NCBI GenBank assembly: GCA_904063045.1
Contig: CAJFCJ010000019.1
Location: 2,672,684-2,736,683, forward strand
DNA from: Dimorphilus gyrociliatus
Lineage: Eukaryota; Animalia; Annelida
Reading direction: 5' to 3'
Length of the DNA stretch: 64,000 bases
Below are positions 24,019 to 56,295 of this stretch, piece after piece (the stretch's first letter is position 1; each line of letters begins with the position of its first letter). The translations under genes were made by a program, and so were the position numbers. Below the pieces are notes generated by a model, which saw only the letters and a program-made list of their open reading frames with translations, was not told the DNA's origin and did not search any database.

Positions 24019-24163
24019 ATAATGAAAAACGAAAAAAAACTGGTCCGTGAGAACTTTTCTACCGAGGAGTGCGTCTATGCGCGCCGCTTTTTAAGTGACC
24101 CCAGCCACCTAACCACCTTAGCATCGATTTTTGTATACATTTTCGCGCGTTTCCTGAAGTAAC

Positions 24164-24178
24164 GCGCCAGGTGGCGCC
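24164..24178 (+). promoter_or_regulatory. CTCF-like motif just downstream of the TARP stop codon
   Basis: GCGCCAGGTGGCGCC inside a CpG-rich patch (about 24060-24440). Confidence 0.5.
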
Positions 24179-24510
24179 GTCCAGCAATAGAGAAAAATAT
24201 TCGCGTTCCCTCCTCGTAAACGACCTGTCAGATTTGTTTGTGATGTCCGATCATCTCTAAGCATGTCATTCGGTCGCCCTTACGCGACACTTCTTTGTAT
24301 AATTTTTTTTACGCGCCCGCTTGAAGCGCGTCGGAGGATACGTAATTTGATTGTAGCGATTAGTAATTTATTTGATTGGCGGACGTTTTCGAGTTCGTCC
24401 CGCGGCTAGCCTCTAAAAACATTTTTTCGCCTGCTTAATTAAACTAACAGGATCGACGGCTATATTATTTCCTTTTTGTACCATTTTTCTGCAATATTGT
24501 CTACAACGTA

Positions 24511-24531
24511 CATAAATATATAAATATATGA

Positions 24532-24578
<47 letters not shown>

Positions 24579-24630
24579 TATATTTATGCATATAAATGTA
24601 TAAATATATATACCGTACATATATATATAT

Positions 24631-24667
<37 letters not shown>

Positions 24668-24668
24668 A
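24511..24668. repeat. Compound (TA)n-rich low-complexity tract
   Basis: Several TA runs with short interruptions; they explain the YIYIYI pseudo-ORFs in the track. Confidence 0.9.
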
Positions 24669-27600
24669 AGTGGAATGTGTAACATCTATATCTATACATA
24701 CATTATGCATGCGACTTATACTAATTGCAAATTTTTGCTGTACAAGCTGCATATGTTATGTATATACAAAAAAAAATAATAATAATGCTCTGCTGAACTG
24801 TATACCGTTTGTAATAAACCCGTTTGCCAAGATCTCTGACTGTATGCTTATGTTATTTAAACGAAAAAGCACAACATTTACACACTTAGGCATGATGCCA
24901 TCTAGAAACTATTTCTCTGTTTGAAAAGAGATTATCGTTGATAAAGTCCCTAAAAGACTCATAGTCACTTGATGCACTCGATTATGATTAAAGAACTACT
25001 GATAAAATGTACGTATTCTATCATTAGGAAATAGTAGTGAGGCAATTCGTTTGTGTTTGATTACTTAACGTTTTCTATTTTGATGCAAAATAGCAAAAAG
25101 TCATATATAAACTTCAAAAGACAGTATTCTATCGTGTTTCTTCCATAAATACGTGACTTATTTGCGATTTTTTAGCTTTGGAGCGATCATAGTTCCTATG
25201 CCGTGATAATCAATAATCCATGGAGTGCATAATACGTCTTTCCTAAGAAAAATTTTGGACTTTCCGTAACAAGCTTATTAGTGAGATGACACTTTAGAAT
25301 TATCATTAAAGTGATAAAAGTATTTCTGAAAAGGTTCTTGACGAAAGGACGCTGAAATCTAGCTGTTAGGGAGAAGAAGTAGCTCCTTCTTACGAAAATC
25401 TGTTTTCTTGTAATTATTTAAAGGCTAAGGAATTGAAAGCAATCAGCTAAAGCGCATGTTAAATTCATATAACCATCAAGAGTTGGGAAAAAAGAAAATA
25501 TCTGGTTTTAATCTAAAAAGTCTATACTTTAAATAAAGTTTTTTTTATCATTCTGTTCTGAAATTATGTCAAAAGAAAATAATCAAATTATAACAGGAAT
25601 GTTTAGATTTATCTACTTGAATTTGTTTCCCTAGGATTTTATGATATCTTATGCAAGTTTACTTTCCTTTGGTAAAACTAATACAGATCGGTCTCTAGCC
25701 TATTTCTTTTTCTATTCTGCATGTGTAATTTAGACTTAAAATTACCTTGTTGCATTGCACTTAGGTATTTGATTACTACTACATAAAATAAGCATGTTTT
25801 GTCTCTGAAAAAGGATGCAATTACCTTTATTCCTTTGGAGTCAATGAATAAACCAGTAGATATATAATTATGAAATACTTAAGGAGTATTTTTTTCGTAT
25901 GTTTTATTAGTATGTTTAACCTAGTTTTGTATAGTAGCTTCTTCAATATCGTGACGGGGTAGAACTTCTAAAATGGCTCTACATAGATAGCAATTTATGA
26001 AATTGCCTTTATTTGCCGTTTTCTTCATTTCCCGCAGGCGCCTGTATGTAAGTCCTTGAAATTTCTATCCTTAATAAATTATACTTAAGTATTTAAGGCT
26101 ATAACGTTTCTAGTCCAGCGATGACAGTTTTCGTAAGAGTTATCTATCCAGAAAGGCTGGACTCTAGTAGCTAAGTTTATTTTTTTAGGCTTTTTTATTT
26201 AATTGTCAGACTATCATTTTTCAAAACGTCTCTCGCTATATATATAGATATATACATATGTATATATATATATATTTATATATATCTATATATATATATT
26301 TAATACATATGTATACATACATACATATATATATATATGTATATATATATTTATATATATATCGTTGTTTTTGATTTTTGAAGGCAGCGCAATAAAATGT
26401 GCGAACTTTTCAGGGCATAGTTTACATCATAACTTTGTTAATTTATGAAAAATATCAATGAATTCATGGTTTTTCGATGATTTTTTCATATTCTCTCTTA
26501 ACCCATCTCCACATAGCAAGCCAATCTTCTTTATTACCGCCACCTGTAATATTACATAAAATATTTAGAATTAGTCAGCATTAGTAGAAACATTTTTGTT
26601 AAGGCAAATTACACAATAAATATGAGAGAAGAGCATTCCTATATGAAAGTAAATCATCTCTAATAGTCAGATTTATCAATCTTGCGTGATGGGCATTTTT
26701 TATGGATTCCACAGAATACAGATTTTTGACTATTTTTATTTTCTATTATCAAAAGTTGAAGTCAATACAATAAATCTTATTATGTGTTATCTTCTGTAAG
26801 GGTAAAGGTGATTAGTTGTTTTTTGGATTTTTTTTCAAGCTATATTCGCCAAGTATCTTCAAAATCTTCAAGGATTAAGCAAGGTCAATGAAAAAGGACA
26901 AATTTAAGAAAATATTCCATCTTACGGAATCCCGCTTTTTTTGTGTAATATTTGGTAGCGTAAAGCGGAAACATAATTTCCTTTTTCAGTCTAATAAAAA
27001 AAATCTTTTCCCCTTCCATAAGCCCAGCAAACAGCTATTAAGCAATTAAGCATAATAATGGAACCAAGTATAACCGAAACTAATTACAAAAAACTATATA
27101 TAATTAAATATATTGATGATATTTTTCGGTATTGAGGCAAAAAGGAAATTTCTTTTCTTTTGTAGAAATAAGAGTTTACCGAGGTCACTTAAAGGCTAAT
27201 CTTCGTTGAAAAGACATTCAACGTATAATCCAATTGAAAATGTTGAAATATTTCAAGTACTAAATAGAAAGTTATTATTAAAAAAATATTATATTTTTCT
27301 AGTGTGGGAATTGATAAAGAGAAGTAATTCTTTCCTTAAATACACAATTTTTTTGAATAAATTTCCTTTTAAAGTAGGCTAAAGTTTAACAATTTTTCTT
27401 CTCTGTGTCTTTTATTTAGTCTTTTGTCTAAGAAATCGGATTTTAGCTTTAAAAAAATTTCTTCAATTTATTTGACTTTTTTTCCTTCCTATTACAAAAG
27501 ATTTCTTTTACTATGGAAAAAAGGCATGTAAATTAATAAACTATTAATTGAAAAGAGTGTTCCCTTCTTATATTTGGAGAATATATATATGTATATATAT

Positions 27601-29481
27601 AAAGTATATACAGTATACACAGAATGATTATACCGGTTCTTGTCAGTGGTGAACGTGTAATACATACTTTCTATAGCTAGTGTGTATTTTTCATTCATAT
27701 ATGCCTTTGTCGGCTTTCCTAATTGTATCATTAACACCACAAAATGTCATAAAAATGCATTACAAAGGGTTATTTTTTAACTATAATGAACTGAAATATC
27801 TCAAAAGAACTCCTCTCGACTTAAAAATCAGAGGGTGAATGAAGTGTTAAATTTATTTAAAATATCCTTGAAGGTACGTTATACTAGCTGCAACGAAATG
27901 GAAATAGAAAAGAAGTGAATCAGTTGCCACAACTAAGATTGTAGAGAAAAGAAACTATTTAGAATGGTAGTTAATTAGTTGAGAATAAAAGAAGTTGGAA
28001 AACAAAGCCTAAAGCTCTTTTCCTCCATCACACTTGTTAAACTAAGGAAAAGAGGTGAAGAAATGTTGTCTTGTTTATGACCCCAGGATATTGACAAATT
28101 TCTAATTAATTTATCGTTCAAGAGTAAAGTAATAGTTATTAGAGAAGTCTATAAATAGAATTTAAGAAAAAAATATCCATAGACCTTTGATCTAAACTTA
28201 GCACTCTTTCAAAACCTCAGCGCTTGCTTAAAGAAGAATTTCATTGAAATTGATTCCTTTATAAATTCACTAGAAAGTTAATATTAACAGGACGAACAAG
28301 TCATTTATAATAAATTAGAATCAAGAATCAGAGATAACTTTATACTAAATTAACTGATTTCTTTTGCAAAATACACTTAAAAAATCATTTGTTACGTAAT
28401 AATCATTTCTTTAGGATACATTAAGCTGGAAGCTATTTCAATTATTACAAGTATTGAGTAAACCGTGAAAGGCATGATAAAGGGGTTGATGGGTACGTTG
28501 TGAAATATGTACGCCTTAGTGGGCAACTAAACGGAAGTGAGGAAACGTTAAGAAGATCGAACTTATTTATGAGAAATACATGTAAAGTCATGCTTAGGAA
28601 TCCTTTTTCGATAGTAAAGGTACTTTTTTCATTAATACGTATGAAATATAATGCAAGCCTACATACTGTTTTGTCTGATTATATATCTTGTATATGTAAT
28701 GTGTAATATATAATGAAAAGCATAGTCAGGCAATATTTTTTTTCTTAACTGGAATAGGAAAAGGGCGTGTAAAAGGTAATTCTATTATTATTAATGAATA
28801 TTTCATACTTTTCTTTGCATGTGTAATACTTAAGCCGGTTCTATTTAAATTGCCATACAAGAGTAGAGTGTACTTTCAAAAAGTAAGGGTATAGCCACTC
28901 TTTTAGTTTAGCTTTTCCCCCCTCCCTCCCCTTCTCTCCCTCTCTCTCTCTCTCTTGCTCTTTCCTTCTTTCTTTTTTTAAAAAAAAACAAGTAATCTAT
29001 CTGGACTAATCGATGAGAAAAAGCTCTTGTAAAGAAGATTGTCAAGTTTACAACGAACACTCATAATATTTAACATAAGATGTTTTCCAACATTTTCCTA
29101 TAATCATTAATTATTGATAGTTAAATATATTTTATTCGTAAAACTATGAGAAAAAATGAAAGGCGAAATAAAGACATCAATAAGTTTCTGTTAGAAATTG
29201 TAAATGTATTTACAATATGAAACTTCGTTTTGTTTTATCAAACACAAAAAGATTTCTAGAGTCTTATAGAATTTTTCTCATGTTATATTTTTTTGGAAAA
29301 CAGATCGAATACTCAAATTTATTAATTAATAATTATATTGTATCTCTTTAAATAGTTGTTTGTTTGAGATGTTTGATTGTAATTTACTTATTATCTTTAT
29401 AAATGTATACTGAATATTAAAATACTAATACATGTCATTTTTTATGTAAATTATTTCAATAATCTCCTATGAAATGATAAT

Positions 29482-29525
<44 letters not shown>

Positions 29526-30708
29526 AATAAATAAGGATTATAATATTTATACTTTTAGGTAGGATTTGTCATTCTCTTAGTGATATTTTTCTTTCTATTT
29601 GTATTTCGGATTAAGAGATCTAAAGGATGAAATAATCAATTAAGAATAAAAAATTATTAGTTAATTCTTCTATAAAAGAAATATCTATATAGCTTCGTTT
29701 AACAAGGTAAATATAATTTTCAAACTAACAGAAGAAGATCAAAGACTTATTAGTTATTGAAACTATTTTCAATTATGTATAGAAATATTCACTAATAGAA
29801 ATAATAATGGAAAGTAAACGCTTTTTCTTGTTAAGGTAAGCAGACTAAAACCAATTGGGATTTGTCATAGACTGACTAATCTTCGTCGATTCTTCTTTGG
29901 CACTTGTAGAAAAATGAGGAGAATGAGTAATTCCTAAATTGTTAGGCAATCATTTGTTAGTGCATCATGTGCCGATAAGCTTACATGTTTTATTGTCATA
30001 TTGTACGAATAATTACAGGCATTAATAGATTTTTGAATGAGTGCGTTTTTTTCATCGCCCAATGCATTGAAACTCTAGCAAATAGTTGTTACCCAAAAAG
30101 AAAAATAAGATATTATTTTGACATCACACAGATCGTCGTTTTATCAACATAGGTCTTAAATGGTTTCATCAGATTGTCATTTTTGTCTACGTTTGACATG
30201 TATGTTATTTTTACCTCCAAGAATTATTTATCATATACACTTAACCCATTTATTTTTATAACATTTGAGCCTCCAGCTAATGAATCTGTCCAGTTATATG
30301 TCAAACAGTTTAAGATTAGAAATGTACTGTAAGCTAATCTTACATTTTGCATATATTAATGAACATGATTACGCACAATTATTAGAAGGATTTGGCCTTG
30401 AAGCCTGAGTATAAATTATTGAAACTCTAATCTCCATTGGTTTACAATGGGAGTAGAATACAGCAAAAGCGTATGGGAGACAAATTTCATTTGTTCCGAC
30501 AGTCAATTAATACAATTAGTAGTGATAATCCTTATATTTAACTGCAAGTTATAAATCTAAAAGCAACCTTTCTGCTCTCTCTCTCTGGGAGAATATATAA
30601 CAGGGACAAAATCCCACGTGACCTCTTCAAATAATAATGTATACTACTTTTAGTTCTGATGACGTAATTCGTAGTAAACGGTCTGGTACATCAAGTAAAA
30701 TAACTTAC

Positions 30709-33106
30709 ATTCAGGTTTTGGGCGGCTCTTGTACTTTTTTATAAGATCCTTTAAAATACTATTCGTCGCGTGATGTGACCTCATTTTGTTTATCCATTGC
30801 AAGATTTCCATTTGAACATCAGAAGTATTGTTTTCCACATTAGCGCTCCGAGACTCTTCATTAGTTGGCAATCTATAATTTTGGAAAGACCATTAATAAT
30901 TAGTAGCAAAAGCAAACGAAACTTAATAGCTTAATATTATCATTTAATTTTCGTTTTAAAGTACCTTTTTGATTTAATTTCTGCCAATTTCGAAAGGAAG
31001 TTGCGACCATAATCTAAGTGAAATTATCGTAAAGATAATTTAAGAGTGTTTTAAAAGTAAGCATATAACATATAGCTTATAAAAGTTTTTCATCAATTAA
31101 AATTTATGCTTGATAAATACTACATAAATAAACATAAATTACTCTAAGACGTAAAGTAGTAATTGTAAATAATTGAATTTCTGTCCAAATAAAATACGTC
31201 TGGAAGTTGCTGTCTGTCTCATTCATAATAGGCTGCCAGCTACATTCGTACATTAAAGTGTACGAAGAATAATTTAAAATCTTTTAGGAACTGTCATCAA
31301 AAGTTCCTGATAGAGTAATTATTATAAATTGTAGAAAATCTCTGATTCTCAAGAGACAATATAATTCATTCTATTATGGATAACATACTAAATTACATTT
31401 TTAAAATATTAATTAGCATAAACAAACTACTTCACTTTTAGTAATTATTTTTTAATGAAGAGTCCAATTTGTAAAGAAAACAACTGAAGAAATAATTTAA
31501 GAGTTGTTGCCGAAAAATTAAGCTACTTAAAGAAAATGTCCATTTTATCATTTCATCATTTTTACAATTTTCCTTTCATACTACCCTTTCTAGGTGAAAA
31601 GATGATATCGCTTTTAAAGGAAAAAGGAAAAATAGAAAAAGAAATTATTGTGCGCCTGCTGAAATTGGTCTACCAGTGCTTTAAAGAACTAGCCTACTGT
31701 ATGCGGAATTAACTGAACGAACGAAATGGAAAACCGTAAAAGTGTACTTAATTTAGGCTAATCTTTTAACGTATACTATTCTTAAAGCATCCATAATAAA
31801 CGCTTCAATACAGCCCACTAATTGACCGGATATACGTTGTTTTTCACGGGTGCGCGTTTGTAGGCGTCTAGAAGCGTCTTCTCCTCAGCTTCCTTTTAAT
31901 GACAGGTGGTGACGGCGTCAGTACATGTACTCGGTTGTTAAACCCTATTCTTGTTATACTCTGACTGACAACGTTTTTCTCGCATGTTTTACAGTATAAA
32001 AGAAACTATTAAGTATACTTCCTACTTGTTCCCAATCATTTATTAAACAATACAAATTCAATGCAAAAGCATTTACGATCTTTAATTAAAAGCAAATATA
32101 TTTGTGTGAGGAAATGTACCCACAAAGCTGGAGTATTAAATATCAGATTAATCATAAGAGAATTGTATGATTTCTGGTCCGTGTTAAAGGGAATATACAT
32201 AATTAATATACGGGTAATAAGCGTAAAGTTTTTCATTTACATAGTTTCTATTTCTCTATGTTCCAGGTTTTACTTGTATAGATCTATAATTAAATATTAT
32301 GTATTTCATAGTCCGATGCTTTGTATTCTCTCTCACACACTCTCTCTCTCACTCTCTTTCTCTCTCTCTCTCTTTCTTTCTCTTCTTAAATATTGACAAG
32401 AAATTGACAGTTTCTCCAATATTTATCTTATTATTTTATACTTTGCAAAAATTTTAACTTTTTTTGTTGACTAAGCAAAGTGTAGCATTTTCAAATACAT
32501 TAAAGAAGGAATGCGAAAGGGGTTGATATGAAAATTACTGACGACAAGAGAATAATAATCCTTTTTCACCTAGGGAAAATCTCTAAAGATTAAGCAACAG
32601 GATTTTCTTCTAAGGGTGATGAAATAAGAATTATATCTATTCAAAAAACCTATTTGCTAATTACCAAAAAAAGAAATATCTCTATATTCCTTTCTCCTTT
32701 TCTCTCTCTCTCTTTCTCTCTCTTTCCCTCTTTCTCTCTCTTTCCCTCTCTCTCTCTCTCTCTCTCTCACTCTCTCTCTCTCTCACTCACTCTCTCTATC
32801 TTTCTTTTCATAAAAACTTTTATGAATATTAGAAGGCGACCCTTTTCCTTTTGAAAATCACCGTTTCTCAGTCTTTTTATCTTTATTTATATATTCGACA
32901 GTAATGAGAGTTACGTTAATTTGGAAATGTTTGATCGTTAAGCGTCTAAAATTCGTTAGCTTTTTTATGAGGATACTCAGAAATAAAGCGTTTTACTTAG
33001 CAGATCTTAACTTACCAACTTCTCCAAATTGAAATCCAACAGAATAGTTCAATGAAGAGCACAACATGACCGCCAGGAAAAGAATTACATAAGTATGAGA
33101 ATACAT
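30709..33106 (-). CDS. Candidate secreted prepropeptide-like protein (3 exons identified, 3' end unresolved)
   Basis: Exons 33106-33016 (MYSHTYVILFLAVMLCSSLNYSVGFQFGEV, donor GTAAGT, phase 1), 31013-30965 (DYGRNFLSKLAEIKSKR, donor GTACTT, phase 2) and 30872-30709 (LPTNEESRSANVE...KYKSRPKPE, donor GTAAGT). All phases match. A 47-nt upstream intron (33160-33114) has a GTAAGA donor and TTTCAG acceptor. No homology evidence. Confidence 0.5.
32700..32810. repeat. (CT)n-rich imperfect microsatellite
   Basis: Long polypyrimidine CT-repeat tract; similar tracts at about 4190-4250, 9177-9260, 28917-28960 and 32330-32385. Confidence 0.9.
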
Positions 33107-33184
33107 GATGAAGCTGAAACTTTTCGAAGTGGCCGAAGTGCAGGAAAGCCTCGCTCTTACCTGCTGCCCTCTGTGAGCGTCTCA

Positions 33185-33192
33185 TGACGTCA
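33185..33192. promoter_or_regulatory. Perfect cAMP-response element (CRE) palindrome
   Basis: TGACGTCA, 79 nt upstream of the ATG of the candidate secreted-peptide gene. Confidence 0.5.
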
Positions 33193-33466
33193 CCTTCTCT
33201 CTGTCACTTGAAAAATGAAAAAAGAGCCTTACAAGTTACACAATCTTATCTTTGGCTGGACAAGTATTATCTAGTGTCCAAGTATCATAATTCTGTTCGT
33301 TTTAGACACATTATTAAGTTCCGCGAAGCGTCTTTCCTAGAAAATAAGCTATCTACATTTCAGCTAGAATCTTATTTCATCCCGAATAATTAATACCTCA
33401 AAAATAATTCTTCAAATATCATCCAAAAATTCAACCCTAAGTGCCCAAATGCTCATATAATAAATG

Positions 33467-33481
33467 CCGCTAGATGTCGCT
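33467..33481 (+). promoter_or_regulatory. CTCF-like motif (GTC variant)
   Basis: CCGCTAGATGTCGCT. Confidence 0.45.
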
Positions 33482-36139
33482 TTTAAAAAAATATATTTGA
33501 GCGCAAATATCAAACAAGGAAATATGATACATCGAAATAACGATGGCCTAAATTGCCCTCCCAAACACTCCCAACCATTTCGTTAATTTTAGCTAGCAAA
33601 TGTTCCTTTCTACTGTCTGTTAAGGAGGCCAAAAAAAAAAGCAAAATTTTTTCACTGTGTTTATGATGTTATTATGATAATATATTTAAAAATAAAAGAC
33701 TATTTATACGAAAACACAAGTTTTCGGGAATAATTCACTTTCACGAATGATTCGCGATACCTCATTGAGAAAACCTTATGAAACGTATCAATATTACGAA
33801 ATGATATAGGCTAATAGAAAAAGTAATACCGCATAAATCCCTTATTCATTCATATATTATAAAAAAGAAAAGCGTAATATTCTATAAATAATTCATGAAA
33901 CACTTTATTTTGTTTACTAATTTATTAATAAAATACTGTATTTATAACTTCAACTTTTCCGACATTTAGTCAATTTTCAGATCAAATATTTACTTAGAGC
34001 AGTCCGTACTTTAACGGTAAATATTATCAAAGCAGAAAGCTCCTTTCAAAAACTTCATCAAAGTTACGTAATAATACAATTTATTCAAATTAACTATAAA
34101 ATACTTTTATTAAATTGAAGCGAAAAATGAGCTTTATAAATTACAAAGCAAAATAGTATATGATGTTCAATTTAATGAAATATAATATAAATAATATTAT
34201 AATTCAATATTATAATTATATAATAAGATATAATATAAAAGTATATTTTACTTATTCGTAAATGGTCGAGTTTGGTGTAATTTTCCAGAAATTCTTTACA
34301 GTAAAAGAGATAAAAAATAAGATGAGATGGGTTGCGCTTTTCTTGTCAGATTTTTCATCTAGAAGATGTTGTTTACAAGCATTAAATGTCGTAACAGATT
34401 TTCAGTTCAATTTTCTGTCTCTTAACTAAACGTAAATATACTATTTATAAAGTGCAGACAAGAATATTTTATCTTTTCGTCACCAATAATCAATCAATGA
34501 TTACAAATGACAAAAAGGGAAGATTGTTTTTGACAACCTCTGATCCCTGACACTTTTGTCTAGGACTCAAAATGTAGAAAACAATCACATAGGCTTTCCG
34601 GGAACAAAATTTCAAAGGAACTAAATGATTATTTTAGTAAAAACTCCATTTTCTTTCTGTGAGGCCTGAGATGCTTAAACGGTTAAAGGTTATCTATTGA
34701 AGATAATGTCTCTATATTTCTTATTAGCTCTGCTAAATCGTAAACTATTTCGATGTTATTAGTTTTCCAAAGATATTTACTAAAATCTCTTGGGTTCAAT
34801 CTTTCGGTTTTAATTGATATCTTCTCAGCATAATCAGTTAAACCACAGTCGTTATCCGGTTGAAAGGATATTGAAAGGTTGAATTATATAAGTTTCAACA
34901 TCTTTAATTACAACCTTTCGTGAGCAAAATGTACCTTATCTCGGGAAATTCCGACTATTTTAGCTCCTCTCTCGACCTTCATAAACAGTTCAAAGTGGAT
35001 CTTTGTTACTCTTTTTTATAAGTATTAGCTTTTTATGATGTCTTTGAATCTTCCTCTTTGATATTGGTATATCTTTAGGCTTCCTTTTATCTTAGTACTG
35101 TTATTGTTTCCCTTTTTATTCTGTTTGTCTTATCATTTGCATACTCTTTTTAGAACTTTCGTTTGTGAAAAATCTAACGTTTTTCACATTACATTCTTTC
35201 ATTGTTTAATAAAAAGATATCTAAGCTATTCAAATGTGAAATTAATTCCTGATCAGCTCCATCTACCTTTTATTAGAATTTTATCATAATAAACGATAGG
35301 AAAGCATACTTGTTAACTTCCGTTAGATATAGTTACTATTAAATACACCTAGCCTCAATTTAAGGTTTTACAGAATGATAGTAGAAAATTAAAACCGGAA
35401 AGTGTGTCTTTTAAAGTGGAAATATAAAAAGACTGACCCTGTTTTCAACTATTTATTACAATTATCTATATTTTTACAACTTTAAAGATAGAAAGTTGTT
35501 TTTTTTTTTGTTAGTTTCTAGTAAATAACACTTGGCAGAATTATTCAAATTCTCACTAATATATTCATTTTGTTTGTACTTGTGTAACATTTAATTTACT
35601 AAATTATGGATAGACGTTTTTATTTACTTAATAATGATCAGTCAATAGATTAATGGTGTTCATTTTGTACCTATTACATATTCATAGTGAAAAAAGTATC
35701 TACATTTATAAATAGTATATTATTAACTATACATAAAAAATGTATTCTTTAGATAAATTCTGATAAATAGATTTATTAATATCTAATCAATACGTGAATT
35801 TAGTTTCTATTAAGCAAACTGCAAAAAAAATACTTTGGTATAAATATACAGTATATAAAACTATATGTGTTATATACAGCAATGTATATACAGTATAAGA
35901 GAAGACGATATTATATTGATAATTAAGCTCTATTATAACTATAACTGAGTATCAACTGTGAAGGGATTATACAATAAAGGAATTAGCACCTTATGAAAGA
36001 AATATTCTCGATTTATACAACGTACGTCTGATTAAAATCGATAAAGAGCGTTTAAATAGGGCTATGGTCGCGTATTGATTAAGGAAGAATCGATGCAGAG
36101 TTGCAGTTTCGCAGAACTAGTGTGTGGCTGCGCTGCAGC

Positions 36140-39100
36140 ATGCTGCTTCGTTTATATTTTGTATTTATAACCGTTTTTGCTGGTTTGTTGATGATAAAAT
36201 TATAATTCTAATATTAAATATAATATGATTTATTAATATTAAATGCAGATCTTAATATACCTAATTGTCATAAATGGTATTATAGCAAGCCTGCTTGTAG
36301 TAATCATCCTGACGGATATAGGTAAATTATTTTGTTTTCTGCATAATGTGGTTCGTAAATTATTAAGATATCTTTTAGGTGTACTTGCGGTCCAGGATTT
36401 TTATGGAATACTCATATATGCGTTGCAGAGGGTCTAAATTCTGCGTTTGAATTCCATCCAACGAACGACAGCAAATTCGTCTTATTAAATGACAAGCAGT
36501 TTCCTGATTTAAGAGCTTTCACTCTTTCTTTATGGCTAAAACCGAAATCAGGAACTGTGTTATCATATAGTTCAAACCAAAAACCCAACCTCTTGACAAT
36601 AAGCATCAGTGAAGCTAATCATCTTAATCTTAAACTAGATTCTAGTCTTTTCCAGATAAGGAGAAGTTACATTCCTAGTCAGATATGGTCACATCTAGTC
36701 TGGACTTGGGAAGGGCGAAATAAACACAAGGTATACGTCAATGGAAACCGTATAGAAATTAAAGGACATGGAAAAGACTCAAGCCGTTCCGAAATACCCG
36801 GAAATGGGAGGCTTGTTCTCGGTCAACAGAGGGCCACAAATGGTGCTAGAGCTGATGAAGAGCAATGGGTTAGAGAAAAAGAATTTGTAGGGCATGTTGC
36901 TTTTTTAAATATTTGGAAAAAAGTTCTCACTTTAGAAGAAATTGTTCAAATAAAAGAAGATTGCAAATTAAACTGGTGCGGGGATGGAATAGAATGGGCA
37001 GATCTAAGATCTGGAACGAGAGGTCCTCTTCGTATGAGATGGCCGTCAGATGTTCCGTTTTCAAACGACATCTGTTTTAGCGGTAAAGAGCAAGCAGATT
37101 CGTGTGAAAAATTTTGTACCGTTACCGAAGGTGCCCAATGCAATGCCGAAATAGCAGAAAATATTGAATGGCCTAGATCTAAAGCAAATTTAACATTAGT
37201 AATGCCTTGTCCAGGGTTAAGTTATCCTCTAGATTATACAAATAATAGTTATCCAGAACAAGCTAATTCAACCAGAGCATGCGGCGTAGAGGGAACCTGG
37301 CAAAGCCCTAATGTATCAGCTTGTCTTTCAGGAGCAGTCAGTTTATTCTTTAAAAACGTCTCCAACCCAACTATAACCAGTAATAAGGAGGATTTGCCCA
37401 TCAAACTATTACACGAAATTCATGACCTTATTGATGCTAGATCTTATTCTAATCCTCTAGATATATCAACGTTAGTAGAATCATTTGGAAAAATAGTAGA
37501 GTTGCAAAGTAAATCCGTTTATGATCCCACCTACACTAAACATATTAGAAGAAAAGACTCATCGTATCCAAAGTGGGATCAAACAATAGAATTTTTTGAA
37601 TTGTCTGTAGAAATAATCAACAAATTAACTGGAGATCGAAACAGCGAAGGCTGGCAAGCGGCTCAACCAATGGGAATCGAAGGGGACTACTTGGCGAACA
37701 CTCTGGAATCATTAGTTCAGCTAGCTGTAGAATCGTTACTTTTTGAGAGGAGGGGAGATGCAAGTAGAAGAAAACTCAGCGTTAAATCAGACACTTTCAC
37801 AATAGAATCAAACGTATTAAAAAGGTCATCGGACTTCGAATATTCAGAATTGAAAGACATCTTATCATGGAATCTAATAGAAAATGAAGGCACTGTAAGA
37901 TTGAGTGCCAATTACAGCGATTCTGAAAATTTGATCGTTACATTGGTGAAAGCTTCATTTGGAAATATCTTACCCACTCAACGAGAAAATAAAAAGATGG
38001 ACAAAATTAATTCGGCAGTATTTGCCGCGTTTGCTCACCGTAAAAACAAACGATTAAACTCTCCGATTACAATCGATTTACATCTGAAGTACCTGAACAA
38101 TTTCAATATTTCAGAACAAAAATGCGTTAGATTAATGCATGGTCCATTTTGGCATTGGACAGGAGCAAACTGTTCATTAAATTCCAAGAGATCTTCAGTA
38201 AATTATGCACATTGTGTTTGTTCAACATCGGGCTGGTTTGCTGTAACAACTCATATGTTTAACGATAATTGGGTAAGGGAGGAGAAGCCCTTAGAGTTGC
38301 TTTTACTCCCGTCGTACATTGGCTGTGCAGTATCCACGACACTCTGTATTCTAGCTTGCTTTCTGCACCGTTATGTTAAAACAGCCTCTCAAACCGCTCT
38401 AATTCACAAGAATTTAGCAATTTCAATAGCATTCAGCCAGTTAACCCTCATGTTTAGTATTGACAAACTAAAGTACGACACAATTTGCAAGGCTTCCACC
38501 GTTTTACTTCATTATTTTTTTATATCGTCGTTTGCTTGGCTAATGAATGAAGCATTTAATTTATACACAGTTATTACATATGCGGCCCATTCACACTCAG
38601 AATCCTCTGCTGAATCGAGCTCACAGTGGCGCTACTATATTCTTGGTTGGTTACTTCCGGCCGCTCTGGTTGGCGCCTTTATTGGTACCTATAATAAAGA
38701 TTATTACTCGTTAGAAATGTGTTTTGTGGCTTGGAAGCATAAATGGCTTTGGATAGGACCAGCAACAGCTATGTTAGCAATTACTGTTCTAGTTCTTATT
38801 TTTACAGCTAAAGAGCAACACGAGAGCTCTTACAGTAAGAATGAAAAGACGAATAAAAGTATATTTAATCATTCAAAGGCATTATGGAGTCAAGTAATTT
38901 TGCTAACCATGTCATGGTCATTTGCTTTTATATCACTCAGAATGGTTGGGGCTATCGTGAAATGGCTATACGCACTTTTCAACTGTCTTCAAGGAGCTTT
39001 CTTTTTTATATTTTTCTCGGTTTTACACGACGAAGTTAGAACTTTCCTTATCGCTAAGAAGAAACAACATAATCTTTCAAAGCATGGTTACGATTATTCA

Positions 39101-39295
39101 CCAACCCAAACGGACTCGGATTTTTGTCAGCCTCCGGTTGCATTGATGGATGTTGGAGTTCCATCTGTCAGCTCCCCGACAGACTTTCAATCGACAGACG
39201 ATGACGAAAGAGAAGGTTATTCAACCTTATCAAGACGTAAAAATATGTCGAAAAGTAGTGAATCTGAATGCGAAATTATGGTTACTAGTGTCTAA
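36140..39295 (+). CDS. Adhesion GPCR (about 1010 aa): signal peptide, EGF-like module, pentraxin/LamG domain, HRM, GAIN/GPS, secretin-type 7TM, PDZ-ligand tail
   Basis: Exons 36140-36182 (MLLRLYFVFITVFA), 36249-36321 and 36379-39295; 66- and 57-nt GT-AG introns in phase. EGF-like CHKWYYSKPACSNHPDGYRCTCGPGFLWNTHIC; pentraxin FTLSLWL...HLVWTW...LVLGQ...FVGHVAFLNIW; HRM IEWP...MPC...TRAC...GTWQSPNVSAC; GPS CVCSTSGWFAV; 7TM with HKNLAISI, HYFFISSFAWLMNEA, LGWLLPA, FNCLQG. The first exon is the least certain. Confidence 0.9.
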
Positions 39296-44283: not shown

Positions 44284-45336
44284 ATGGATGATAACGTATC
44301 GCAATCGTTCCGGTCGAATAATGTATCTTTGGAGCTATCGAATCCACCTATTGAATCTATCATAATTCCTGTTGTCTTTGGGTTAATTGTTCTTGTTGGT
44401 GCAATCGGTAATGTTCTGGTTCTAATCGCCGTCTTCCGACAGCCTATGAGAACAACAACAAATCTCTTTATTGTTAATTTAGCAGTCGCAGATCTTTTAT
44501 TCCTTATCTTTTGTGCCCCTTTTCATGCAATCGTCTATACTCAGCATTGGTATTTTGGGGAGGTAGCCTGCAAATTGGTCCATCTTCTTCAATTTTCAGC
44601 CATGCTTGCAAGTATTTGGACTTTAGTTACTATGTCTGCTGATAGATTTTTGGCTGTTTCGTTTCCTGTGCGGACGAAACATTTGCGGAAGCCTAGAGCA
44701 GCTCTGATTAGTAGTTCGTTGGTGTGGGTCTTGGCTGTTTTTTCGTCTGTATTATGGCCTATAGTCTACACTATAAGAAAATACGGAGATATTCCCGTCT
44801 GTAGTGACGCCTTTGACAGTGATCAGAAAAGAGCTTCAACTTTTCTACTTTTGTTCGTGTTCGGTTACGCTATACCATTAGCTGTCATAGCACTTCTAAG
44901 CGCTTTACTTATACGGCAACTGTGGAAAACACCAATGGATTGTTCTCGGCGAGCAAGTACTGAAGCCAAGAAGAAAGTAACTCGCTTAATAGTCGTCGTA
45001 GTCCTCGCATTCGCCCTTTGTTGGCTGCCTTCTCACGTCTTTTGGCTTTATACAACACTTCACAAGCTTCATCAGGGTAGGGAGGCACCCAAGACCATGG
45101 CACTCTATGTTTTTAGAATGATTAGCCACGTTCTCTCCTATGCCAATTCGGCTGTCAATCCAATACTTTACGCATTTCTATCCAGACATTTCCGGATAGC
45201 TTTTAGGAGGGCGTTAAAATGTGAAAGATCGAATATATCTGAATCATATTGGATAAGCAGTGCAGCCCATCCACATTACAACATTCGCTTAGACAGAAAA
45301 TCTCATGGCCAGGGAGATGATTCGAAACACTTATAA
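44284..45336 (+). CDS. Galanin/allatostatin-A receptor family neuropeptide GPCR (350 aa, intron-less)
   Basis: GNVLV, MRTTTNLFIVNLAVADLLF, FCAPF, WYFGEVACKLVH, DRFLAVSFP, CWLP, SHVLSYANSAVNPILYAFLS..FR. Confidence 0.88.
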   Translation: MDDNVSQSFRSNNVSLELSNPPIESIIIPVVFGLIVLVGAIGNVLVLIAVFRQPMRTTTNLFIVNLAVADLLFLIFCAPFHAIVYTQHWYFGEVACKLVHLLQFSAMLASIWTLVTMSADRFLAVSFPVRTKHLRKPRAALISSSLVWVLAVFSSVLWPIVYTIRKYGDIPVCSDAFDSDQKRASTFLLLFVFGYAIPLAVIALLSALLIRQLWKTPMDCSRRASTEAKKKVTRLIVVVVLAFALCWLPSHVFWLYTTLHKLHQGREAPKTMALYVFRMISHVLSYANSAVNPILYAFLSRHFRIAFRRALKCERSNISESYWISSAAHPHYNIRLDRKSHGQGDDSKHL

Positions 45337-47566: not shown

Positions 47567-49094
47567 TTTTTCATTTAGCTATTCTGTATAAAAAGTCTGC
47601 TTAAAATACATTAAAATCAATCTAAATATAGCATATTTTATTGCCCAAATGTTCTGGTAAGTTTCTTCATATGTAAATTTAACGTGTTTTTTAAACAAAT
47701 ACTATAAAAGATCTATAAATAGTAGGATAAAAAATAAAAAAATAATGACATTAAAAACTTTATTTTTGTAGAATTGTTCTAATTTAAATTTAATCGAATT
47801 ATTTAGTTTTAAGCTCTTTAGAAGTTTCTTTTTAATTTTAGCTATTTATTTTAAAAATAATACAATCTCTTAGCCCACTGCCCTCCTCTTCTCCCAACGC
47901 CCCCTTACCTTTCTCTCTAGAGATAAAAAAGATTGGCGAATATTTCAATTCAGCCTAGGTATTGACAAAATATTTCATTGGTTTATTTTCAACGAGATCT
48001 TGAAGGGTTAGGTTAAAACAATATGTAATACATCAACAAAAATTCTTTACATGCAATGTATATATAATATAACTGTTAAAGAAGTAATAAAATGTAAATA
48101 TGACTATTAATAGAGCGAAGCTGGCAAAGTGAATATATTGTATAAATTATTTAATCTTCAATCGTTGTTTTTCAAAGAAACACTAAAAAAATGGCTTAAA
48201 ATTAATAAATTAGTTATACTAATTCTGTGCGAAATAATTGGCAGTTAATTCATTAGTGTCTATTAATAAAAAGTAAATACGGTATATTAATATATTCATT
48301 TGGCATATTAAGTTTTGAATAATTAAAAGTATTTTCTAGCTATTTTAGGAATGATAGTTTTGTTGGCGTGAGCTATATTCTATTGAAAATATAGGCATTT
48401 TTGTAGTTATGAAAAACAAATAATTTTATGGAATAACTGTGGCGTCATCTACTGTTTTATTACAGAGGTCAAAAGCTTTCCTCTTTTCAAGTAAATATAT
48501 TTTAATTAAATACAAAAAGGGCGTATTTACACGCTCTGTAAAAAAGTTGTCTTTCAATGAATGAAACTCATTAATTCCCACCGGAAATTGCCTACTCTGT
48601 GACGTCAGGTCTTCTAACTTTTTCTCCAAACATTCGATAATTTTTTTACGCCAATTGGTGTTCCCTACAGAAAACGCTCAAACTAGCCAATCTTATCCAT
48701 TCTCTTGATAGGTGGATGTAATTATTCTATCGCCTATAGGTCAGAGCATTCTGATAGACTGAAATAAAAATTCGAACCACGTGAATGTTCCAAATACCAT
48801 TATCATACAACCTTTTGAGAGGCCTATAATAAGATTTAATTAACTGTGAGTTCTATTGAAGATATTAAAACAGAATTCTAATATTGTATTTAGTTATTTT
48901 GTAGGGAAAATGAGTATCTTTCGTATTGTATTTGATAATTGTTTTACACTAAAAAGGTTCATTTTTTCGGCGAAATGGAATTCTATATTTCAATTCTTTC
49001 ATATCCTTGAAAGTTTCTAGTTGCAATTGTTTTTATAAAAACAGTTCCCCGTAGAGTAAAATATTATTCTACATTGATTCTTTACTTAAGGAAT

Positions 49095-54690: not shown

Positions 54691-56295
54691 ATGCAGAGCA
54701 ACGATGCAGTAGCGGACAACGCATCTGGCCGCGTGAATAATGGTTACAGCTGTACGGACTGCAATGCTGCAGTGGAACAGCAGCTGTTGGCGCCGGAGGT
54801 ACGCAGTAAACGTAAGTCGTGTAATACGACAGTATCCGACATAGGTGCGGATTATATGAAAGTTAATGGCGCTGTTCGGCCGTTTAAACAGCTACAACGG
54901 CCAGAACATCAAATTCAAATGTCTCCGACCAAAGAGGAGTTGACTATTGTTACTAACGAAGCCGCTAATCCGCAACTTCAGCAGCAACAACAACAGATAC
55001 AGCATTTTCATCACACTCCAACAGAAGAAAGACACCCAGTTGGACATGGAAAGAGTCACAAGCACAATGTTGGATATCGCCTCGGTCAACGCAAAGCTCT
55101 ATTTGAGAAGAGAAAAAGGATTTCTGATTATGCCCTCGTTTTTGGTATGTTTGGAATACTTGTAATGGTCGTCGAAACGGAATTAACAATGGCCAGAGTC
55201 TATCCTAAGACGTCGTTCTATTCTATAGCTCTCAAATCTTTAATCAGCGTTTCAACGGTCGTGCTCTTGGGCCTAATTATAGCCTATCACGCACTAGAAG
55301 TTCGACTCTTTGCCATCGATAATTGTATAGAAGATTGGCGTATTGCCATGAATACCCGCCGAATTTCGCAGATTTGTGTAGAACTACTAGTCTGCGCAGT
55401 ACATCCTATTCCCGGTTCTTTTTCGTTTCCATGGAAAAAAATATACAAGAATACTGTCTCGTCCGTTTCGGTTCCCGTTGACCTACTCCTCTCACTCCCT
55501 ATGTTCTTCAGACTCTACCTGATTTGCAGAGTAATGTTGCTGCATTCCAAACTATTCACCGATGCTTCCTCTCGATCCATCGGCGCCCTCAATCGAATTA
55601 ACTTCAATACACGCTTCGTTCTCAAGACGTTGATGACAATTTGTCCCGGAACGGTCCTCTTAGTCATTCTGCTCTCTCTATGGCTAATAGCCAGTTGGAC
55701 TTTACGAGCGTGTGAATCTTATCATGATCCAAAGCATGAAAACTTGTTGAATTCTATGTGGTTAATTTCTATAACTTTTTTATCAATCGGATACGGAGAT
55801 ATCGTTCCTAATACATATTGTGGGAGGGCGATTGCTGTTGGAACTGGTGTGATGGGAGCCGGTTGTACGGCTCTAGTTGTTGCCGTTTTAGCTCGTAAGC
55901 TCGAATTAACTAGAGCAGAGAAGCATGTTCATAATTTTATGATGGACACTCAGTTGACAAAACGTTTGAAGAACGCTGCTGCAAACGTTCTTCGAGAAAC
56001 ATGGTTAATTTACAAATATACTAAACTCGTTCGAAAGGTGAACAATTCGAAAGTTCGAGCCCACCAACGTAAATTTTTACACGCTATTCATAGTCTACGA
56101 AAAGTAAAAATGGAACAAAGAAAATTAAATGATTCAGCAAATACACTCGTTGATATGGCTAAGATGCAAAGTAATATGTTCGAAATGATGCAAGAGGTTC
56201 ATCAGAAAACTGCAGAACTCGACTCTCAAATGCGCACTGTGTGTAAACGACTTGAACAATTGACTTCGAGAGGCTCCAGGCCACAATATCCCTAA
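54691..56295 (+). CDS. SK: Small-conductance Ca-activated K+ channel (534 aa, intron-less)
   Basis: [38 protein letters not shown], pore [18 protein letters not shown], calmodulin-binding domain [30 protein letters not shown]...HQRKFL. Confidence 0.97.

Follow-up and report, generated by a model that had tools for sequence, protein, structure and literature searches.

The 64,000-nucleotide stretch of the Dimorphilus gyrociliatus genome analyzed here (forward strand of contig CAJFCJ010000019.1, positions 2,672,684 to 2,736,683; called the window below and numbered from its first letter) contains an apparent gene desert, examined as region 24100–36500 (12.4 kb). A first-pass annotation had placed a hidden gene for a neuropeptide- or prohormone-like precursor on the minus strand of this desert. 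We found that the terminal exon of this gene, 30872–30650, is very probably protein-coding, judging by its translation and by a close relative in which the open reading frame (ORF) is retained. With moderate confidence, the locus is read here as an unannotated, single-copy, lineage-restricted and fast-evolving gene for a small protein that is probably secreted. The earlier observation as a whole was partly confirmed in this way, and its interpretation was partly supported.

Results

The terminal exon was examined through the 73-amino-acid ORF at 30871–30653, which was compared with 1.84 billion protein representatives in an exhaustive HMMER search. The gene model was searched exon by exon, and the joined stretch was examined for stops and length only. 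A single credible relative was recovered, the 82-residue protein P0006, which matched query residues 1–71 with an E value of 4.5e-12. The second HMMER match, P0007 (E 7.7e-4), is a repeat protein and was judged not credible. In the pairwise comparison with P0006 (E 4e-23), 36 of 72 positions were identical (50%) and 71% were positive, with one gap of a single residue. The match opened exactly at the proposed splice acceptor (YR|LPTNEESRS), and upstream of this point P0006 resembled the translated T-rich end of an intron. The first base of the exon finishes an R or K codon and is followed by 73 codons (LPTNEESRS...ELRHQN) and the stop. The two C termini lie within one codon of each other, with ELRHCY-stop in P0006 and ELRHQN-stop in the window. 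The alignment extended 17 residues past the GTAAGT at 30708. Because the match continues past this hexamer up to the common stop, 30872–30650 is the terminal exon and no further last exon exists. The last exon that the first-pass annotation had left open was an artifact of the splice it had assumed at this GTAAGT, and the gene ends with the TAA at 30652–30650.

Invariant between the two proteins were the first nine residues (LPTNEESRS), an N-x-T sequon, and positions that are mostly hydrophobic. The hydrophobic invariants are spaced i, i+3/4, i+7 (W26, I27 and M30; I39, L40, L43, I44 and Y47; Y62, V65 and L69). The retained sequon fits secretion or routing through the endoplasmic reticulum (ER). 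P0006 is known from Logan assemblies only, where it occurs on four contigs, the longest of 19,425 nucleotides. A G protein-coupled receptor (GPCR) is encoded 11.4 kb away, and for its 93%-identical copy P0002 the longest Logan contig measures 19,425 nucleotides as well. We infer that P0006 stems from a closely related lineage in which synteny is conserved, and from the same contig and taxon as P0002. The neighboring genes provide a yardstick for divergence, since identity is 93% for the GPCR copy P0002 and 96% for the copy of an SK-type potassium channel, compared with 50% for the terminal exon. Despite this far faster divergence, the reading frame, the start of the exon, and a near-identical stop were retained in P0006.

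Open frames are abundant in the desert, with ~100 of at least 40 codons and eight of at least 80 codons. Because of these eight, the length of an open frame is uninformative here; exon 3 stands beyond chance because its ORF is conserved across lineages. In a neutral simulation, the window ORF was mutated under the local base composition, and frameshifting indels were left uncounted. Amino acid identity of ~50% was reached at ~0.25 substitutions per site, where the frame was stop-free in 3.7% of trials. At ≤0.15 substitutions per site, identity fell to ≤51% in <0.3% of the simulated trials. Taken over all distances, the simulation therefore makes unconstrained sequence a poor fit, whatever the neutral distance. 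The codon-usage log-odds of exon 3 amounted to 0.20 bits per codon, inside the range of some non-coding frames. This measure did not discriminate between coding frames and antisense or shadow frames and was given little weight.

Translated in the frame of the terminal exon, the window has a TAA 7 codons before that exon, so a spliced exon further upstream is required. A single-exon gene starting from the internal Met was rejected. This Met is variable, and the 20 residues preceding it are the most conserved part of the protein, so that the start codon must lie in an upstream exon contributing two bases. The three minus-strand pieces proposed earlier do join in phase. The model starts with the ATG at 33106–33104, its 91-nucleotide exon 1 (33106–33016) is followed by the donor GTAAGT at 33015–33010, exon 2 follows the AG of a TTAG acceptor at 31015–31014, and exon 3 follows the AG of a TATAG acceptor. 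The coordinates and the phases (1, 2, 1) were verified, and there were no stops in the joined three-exon frame. Features of the locus are compiled in Table 1.

Table 1. Positions of the features of the minus-strand gene model and its surroundings
Feature	Positions in the window	Strand	Basis
Terminal coding exon	30650..30872	-	Translation and homologue P0006
Acceptor AG of the terminal exon (aaaattatAG|A)	30873..30874	-	P0006 homology begins exactly here
GTAAGT inside the conserved ORF, with no splice role needed	30703..30708	-	P0006 alignment continues past it
Candidate exon 2, 49 nucleotides, ..YGRNFLSKLAEIKSK..	30965..31013	-	Open and in phase; weak flanks; no rise in GC content
Candidate first coding exon with signal-peptide-like start	33016..33106	-	Translation, hydrophobic-run statistic, donor score
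Donor TAA|GTAAAAC of the alternative model B, with 32997 as the last exonic base	32995..32996	-	Enumeration; donor score 5.1
Full palindromic cAMP response element TGACGTCA, 80 nucleotides upstream of the ATG	33185..33192		Motif count, GC profile
GC-rich island in the putative 2-kb first intron	31800..31950		Composition profile

The 37-amino-acid ORF that begins at 33106 lies 2.1 kb upstream of the terminal exon on the same strand. Its ATG has an A at position -3 and opens a signal-peptide-like segment of 24 residues, whose hydrophobic h-region, VILFLAVMLC, consists of ten uninterrupted hydrophobic residues. Cleavage is predicted at SVG|F, with small residues at -3 and -1, and would give a mature protein starting FQFGEV. 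It was the only ATG ORF of at least 30 amino acids in 24100–36500 with a hydrophobic run of 10/10 near its start. Under a second-order Markov model, 0.11 such ORFs are expected per 12.4 kb on both strands, and ~0.01 over the 2.3 kb lying upstream on the minus strand. The signal peptide of the first-pass annotation corresponds to this signal-peptide-like start, unique in the desert, and its membership in the gene is a candidate link. That this ORF provides the first exon of the gene seems to us probable, if with some reserve.

Splice sites were scored with rough matrices, which were built on ~39 introns inferred within 264 kb of the genome. An initial unsupervised intron discovery settled on coding sequence and was discarded; later versions were roughly usable. 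The exon 1 donor scored 8.7, which is in the top 1% of the GTs of the region. Together with CAG|GTAAGAG at 33161, the GTAAGT at 33015 formed the pair of best donors among the 259 GTs in 30600–36400. Both sit in a peak of guanine plus cytosine (GC) content, which reaches 51% at 33100–33199. The palindromic cAMP response element (CRE) lies inside the same peak and is a putative promoter element of the gene; two copies of it occur in the 64-kb window versus 0.39 expected. The second copy, at 48600–48607, is located ~470 nucleotides upstream of a P450 ORF starting at 49074. An ATG ORF of 69 amino acids on the plus strand (33184–33393) starts within the CRE of the desert, has no Pfam match and is absent from the protein collection. 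This ORF may represent a divergent transcript, or it may simply result from the GC richness of the promoter. Further downstream on the minus strand, the island at 31800–31950 has 47–49% GC compared with ~27% around it. It carries TGACG/CGTCA half-CRE sites and a minus-strand open frame of 43 codons, and it had no match in the Rfam scan of the window. The island could be an intronic enhancer or other regulatory element, or an alternative exon.

Exon 2 was the weakest part of the model. Its donor, AAG|GTACTT, scored 3.5, against 6.5 as the median of donors inferred to be real, and its acceptor scored -0.9. No rise over exon 2 was seen in the GC profile. In all, 61 internal exons could connect exon 1 to exon 3 in phase, and the 49-nucleotide exon 2 ranked 43rd of these by splice score. 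In its favor, the downstream intron would measure 92 nucleotides, near the species median of 66, and the strong GTAAGT at 33015 stays in frame only via an exon of this kind. An in-frame alternative was found in a direct splice of 32997 to 30872 (model B), which reads ...GKLRSA-K-LPTNEES... and yields ~110 amino acids with a single K and no dibasic site. The KR dibasic site arises across the exon 2/3 junction and is present only with exon 2 in use (model A). On balance, use of the 49-nucleotide exon in the transcript appears doubtful. Two GTAAGT donors had been claimed for the gene. The one at exon 1 stands, whereas the exon 2 donor is GTACTT, and the remaining copy, at 30708, lies inside the conserved ORF. 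The copies at 33015 and 30708 are the only GTAAGT hexamers on the minus strand of 24100–36500, a number not above the expectation from composition.

No family was found for the gene, in agreement with the first-pass annotation, which had recognized none. Pfam searches with the exon products and P0006 returned sub-threshold noise only (DUF5767, E 0.1; Steroid_dh, E 0.037). In a word-index protein search, the 73-amino-acid ORF gave no candidates and P0006 retrieved only itself. Scores against the ESM Atlas (0.79–0.81) were at chance level, and the best E value in a profile search of PDB sequences was 0.34. A low-confidence AlphaFold2 (AF2) model, built on the two-sequence alignment, contained three helices (5–31, 36–48 and 55–72). 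A Foldseek comparison of this model with the PDB gave a best E value of 2.0 and was set aside as uninformative. Nothing was returned when the window was scanned for Rfam families and tRNAs.

The published D. gyrociliatus assembly comprises ~78 Mb in ~350 scaffolds (PMC7854359). No paralogue of the gene was detected in the genome as searched here (77,897,245 bases, 349 contigs). Six local ORFs were looked up by exact match in a collection of 15 billion proteins, and none was present. The public collection includes three neighboring proteins of the contig (NCBI/UniRef) and no protein that contains the terminal exon. As these neighbors are included and the terminal-exon protein is not, the gene appears to be unannotated. 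It is also absent from the published list of neuropeptide precursors of the species, which the genome paper compiled by BLAST and a cleavage-pattern script.

Neighboring Genes and Other Features of the Window

The window has ~31% GC and carries metazoan genes, among them genes for a forkhead protein, ankyrin repeats, a claudin-like protein, an adhesion GPCR, rhodopsin-type GPCRs, a P450 and the SK channel. Nearby GPCRs had been regarded as orphan receptors in the first-pass annotation. The nearest of them, at 44284–45336 (plus strand), is a rhodopsin-type GPCR encoded in a single exon, and among solved structures it matched galanin receptors 2 (E 6e-66) and 1 (E 5e-55) best. Galanin receptors are the vertebrate counterparts of allatostatin-A receptors, an established orthology. 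By these matches, the encoded protein is probably an allatostatin-A-type receptor rather than an orphan. An allatostatin-A precursor is already included in the neuropeptide list published for the species.

A large exon of an adhesion GPCR spans 36557–39295 (plus strand) and contains Pentaxin, HRM and 7tm_2 domains. Because the Pentaxin match begins at profile position 43, a 5' exon with a signal peptide must lie upstream of 36557. The hydrophobic ORF at 36243–36437 is possibly this exon. The relative has a 96%-identical copy of the SK-type potassium channel ORF (54691–56295, plus strand), which differs mainly by a poly-Q run longer by 7 residues. This copy is useful as a yardstick of the divergence between both lineages. 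Microsatellites of (GA)n/(GAGAGA) type were located at 32690–32800, 32330–32400 and 28900–28990; the first of these has >50 similar copies in the genome (75–94% identity).

Discussion

According to the reading favored here, a product of ~110–120 amino acids would be encoded on the minus strand. A GC-rich promoter containing the CRE would precede the ATG at 33106, from which a protein with a cleavable signal peptide would be translated. A first intron of ~2 kb would be followed by the terminal exon, reached either via the 49-nucleotide exon (model A, with KR) or straight from 32997 (model B, without KR). The mature product would be a fast-evolving extracellular protein of three helices and not a precursor of short amidated peptides. 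Fast change combined with a kept frame and a hydrophobic core would be the pattern of lineage-specific secreted proteins that act in reproduction, defense or chemical communication.

Several points weigh against this account. The conservation rests on one sequence pair, the window ORF and P0006. The splice link between the 33106 ORF and the terminal exon is predicted only, although we consider it probable, and the acceptor matrix gave even the homology-supported terminal acceptor a score of just 1.6. The signal-peptide statistic was chosen after the candidate had been seen, and with a looser hydrophobic threshold of 9/10, 1.12 ORFs were expected and 2 were seen, so that its support is moderate. 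Confidence in the AF2 model was low, with a predicted local distance difference test score (pLDDT) of 63.5 and a predicted template modeling score (pTM) of 0.32. No spliced product of the locus is present in the protein collections, and no transcript-derived product of it was found.

Within the secreted-protein reading, a more specific function was considered. The gene could encode a secreted signal specific to the Dimorphilus lineage, such as an undescribed hormone, a pheromone, or a reproductive protein (e.g. a dwarf-male protein), under positive selection. Positive selection on a signaling protein would explain 50% divergence beside neighbors with 93–96% identity, and an annotation based mostly on RNA sequencing of females and embryos would explain the absence of such a gene from it. 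We give this more specific proposal little credence.

In another alternative, the terminal exon would be genuine and form part of a different transcript, whose 5' exons would lie elsewhere, for instance in the island at 31800–31950 or further upstream; the 33106 ORF would be a coincidence, and the protein would perhaps not be secreted. There are 208 phase-compatible donors upstream of the terminal exon, the island with its 43-codon open frame lies between both exons, and the signal-peptide statistic loses strength at looser thresholds, all of which is compatible with such a transcript. However, no strong signal-peptide-like start other than the 33106 ORF occurs in 12 kb, and this ORF adjoins the two best donors of the region, the CRE and the GC peak. 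The conserved sequon, moreover, would suit an ER-routed protein. We therefore regard another transcript as unlikely.

Slightly less probable still is the neuropeptide or prohormone precursor that had been proposed originally, in which, once the signal peptide is removed, a prohormone convertase cut at KR would free a peptide of ~21 residues (FQFGEV...EIKS) and leave the remainder as an associated peptide. Such a precursor would start with a signal-peptide-like segment as seen at 33106, and the KR forms if the 49-nucleotide exon is used. CREs are common in the promoters of neuropeptide genes, and one is present in the putative promoter. The residues just after the putative cleavage site (LPTNEESRS) are invariant, and the size is typical of the precursors published for the species. 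Against these points, the KR hangs on a weakly flanked exon, and an in-frame model without it exists. The further KK of the proposed layout is NK in P0006. An amidation Gly is lacking, as had been noted at the outset, and there are neither repeated peptide copies nor a family match. The part that had been read as the associated peptide carries the conservation and the three predicted helices, so that the conserved element is a helical domain and not a short peptide. The screen of the genome paper by BLAST and cleavage pattern did not list the gene. No tested feature supports a neuropeptide or prohormone precursor, which is speculative.

That there is no gene, and that a chance open frame is matched in P0006 by residual DNA similarity between close relatives, is highly improbable: the many open frames of the desert, the codon-usage score of exon 3 within the non-coding range and the lack of a transcript or annotation in protein collections would allow it, but the joint chance of ~50% identity and an unbroken frame was ~0.02 or less with indels uncounted, the lone gap is codon-sized, the stop position is common to both sequences, the homology starts exactly at the splice acceptor, and the helical hydrophobic spacing is conserved.

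With the small-protein gene favored here, the annotation of a compact annelid genome that serves as a reference would gain a gene it had missed. The gene would illustrate that short multi-exon genes lacking from the public gene set of this genome can be recovered by reading the raw sequence. A young or very fast-evolving gene for a secreted protein amid slowly changing receptor and channel genes would also offer a test locus for the origin and change of such genes. The neuropeptide set of the species, "canonical" in the words of the genome paper, would be extended should the product prove to be a signaling peptide, for which no evidence was found.

The gene was compared with three groups of known systems. 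Precursors of the GnRH/AKH/corazonin type, of which three have been published for the species and whose layout the first-pass annotation had likened to that of the gene, are likewise small, with a signal peptide as predicted here, a short N-terminal segment, a dibasic site as in model A and a longer C-terminal part. In the published precursors, Q directly follows the signal peptide and the peptide ends in G-K-R. In contrast, the present gene has F and not Q at the predicted cleavage site, lacks Gly before KR, shows no sequence similarity to them, and owes its KR to a candidate exon. The earlier likeness did not hold on these grounds.

Single-copy neuropeptide precursors with a helical spacer, such as the cerebrin/PDF or DH31-like precursors of the species, resemble the gene product in their length of 80–120 amino acids, in amphipathic helical stretches and in a signal peptide at the N terminus, which in the gene product is predicted. 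Their conserved element is a short C-terminal peptide with basic sites and an amidation Gly, whereas the C terminus of the present protein is an aromatic helix that ends in ELRH-x-x without basic site or Gly; Pfam and HMMER searches revealed no similarity.

Taxon-restricted orphan secreted proteins form a descriptive class and not a homologous family. Fast-evolving reproductive, defense or pheromone proteins are examples of such taxon-restricted small secreted proteins. For the gene described here, no relatives outside close kin were detected among the 1.84 billion representatives. Like the members of this class, it has relatives in a sister lineage only, encodes a short protein with a probable signal peptide, has diverged fast and was missed by annotation.

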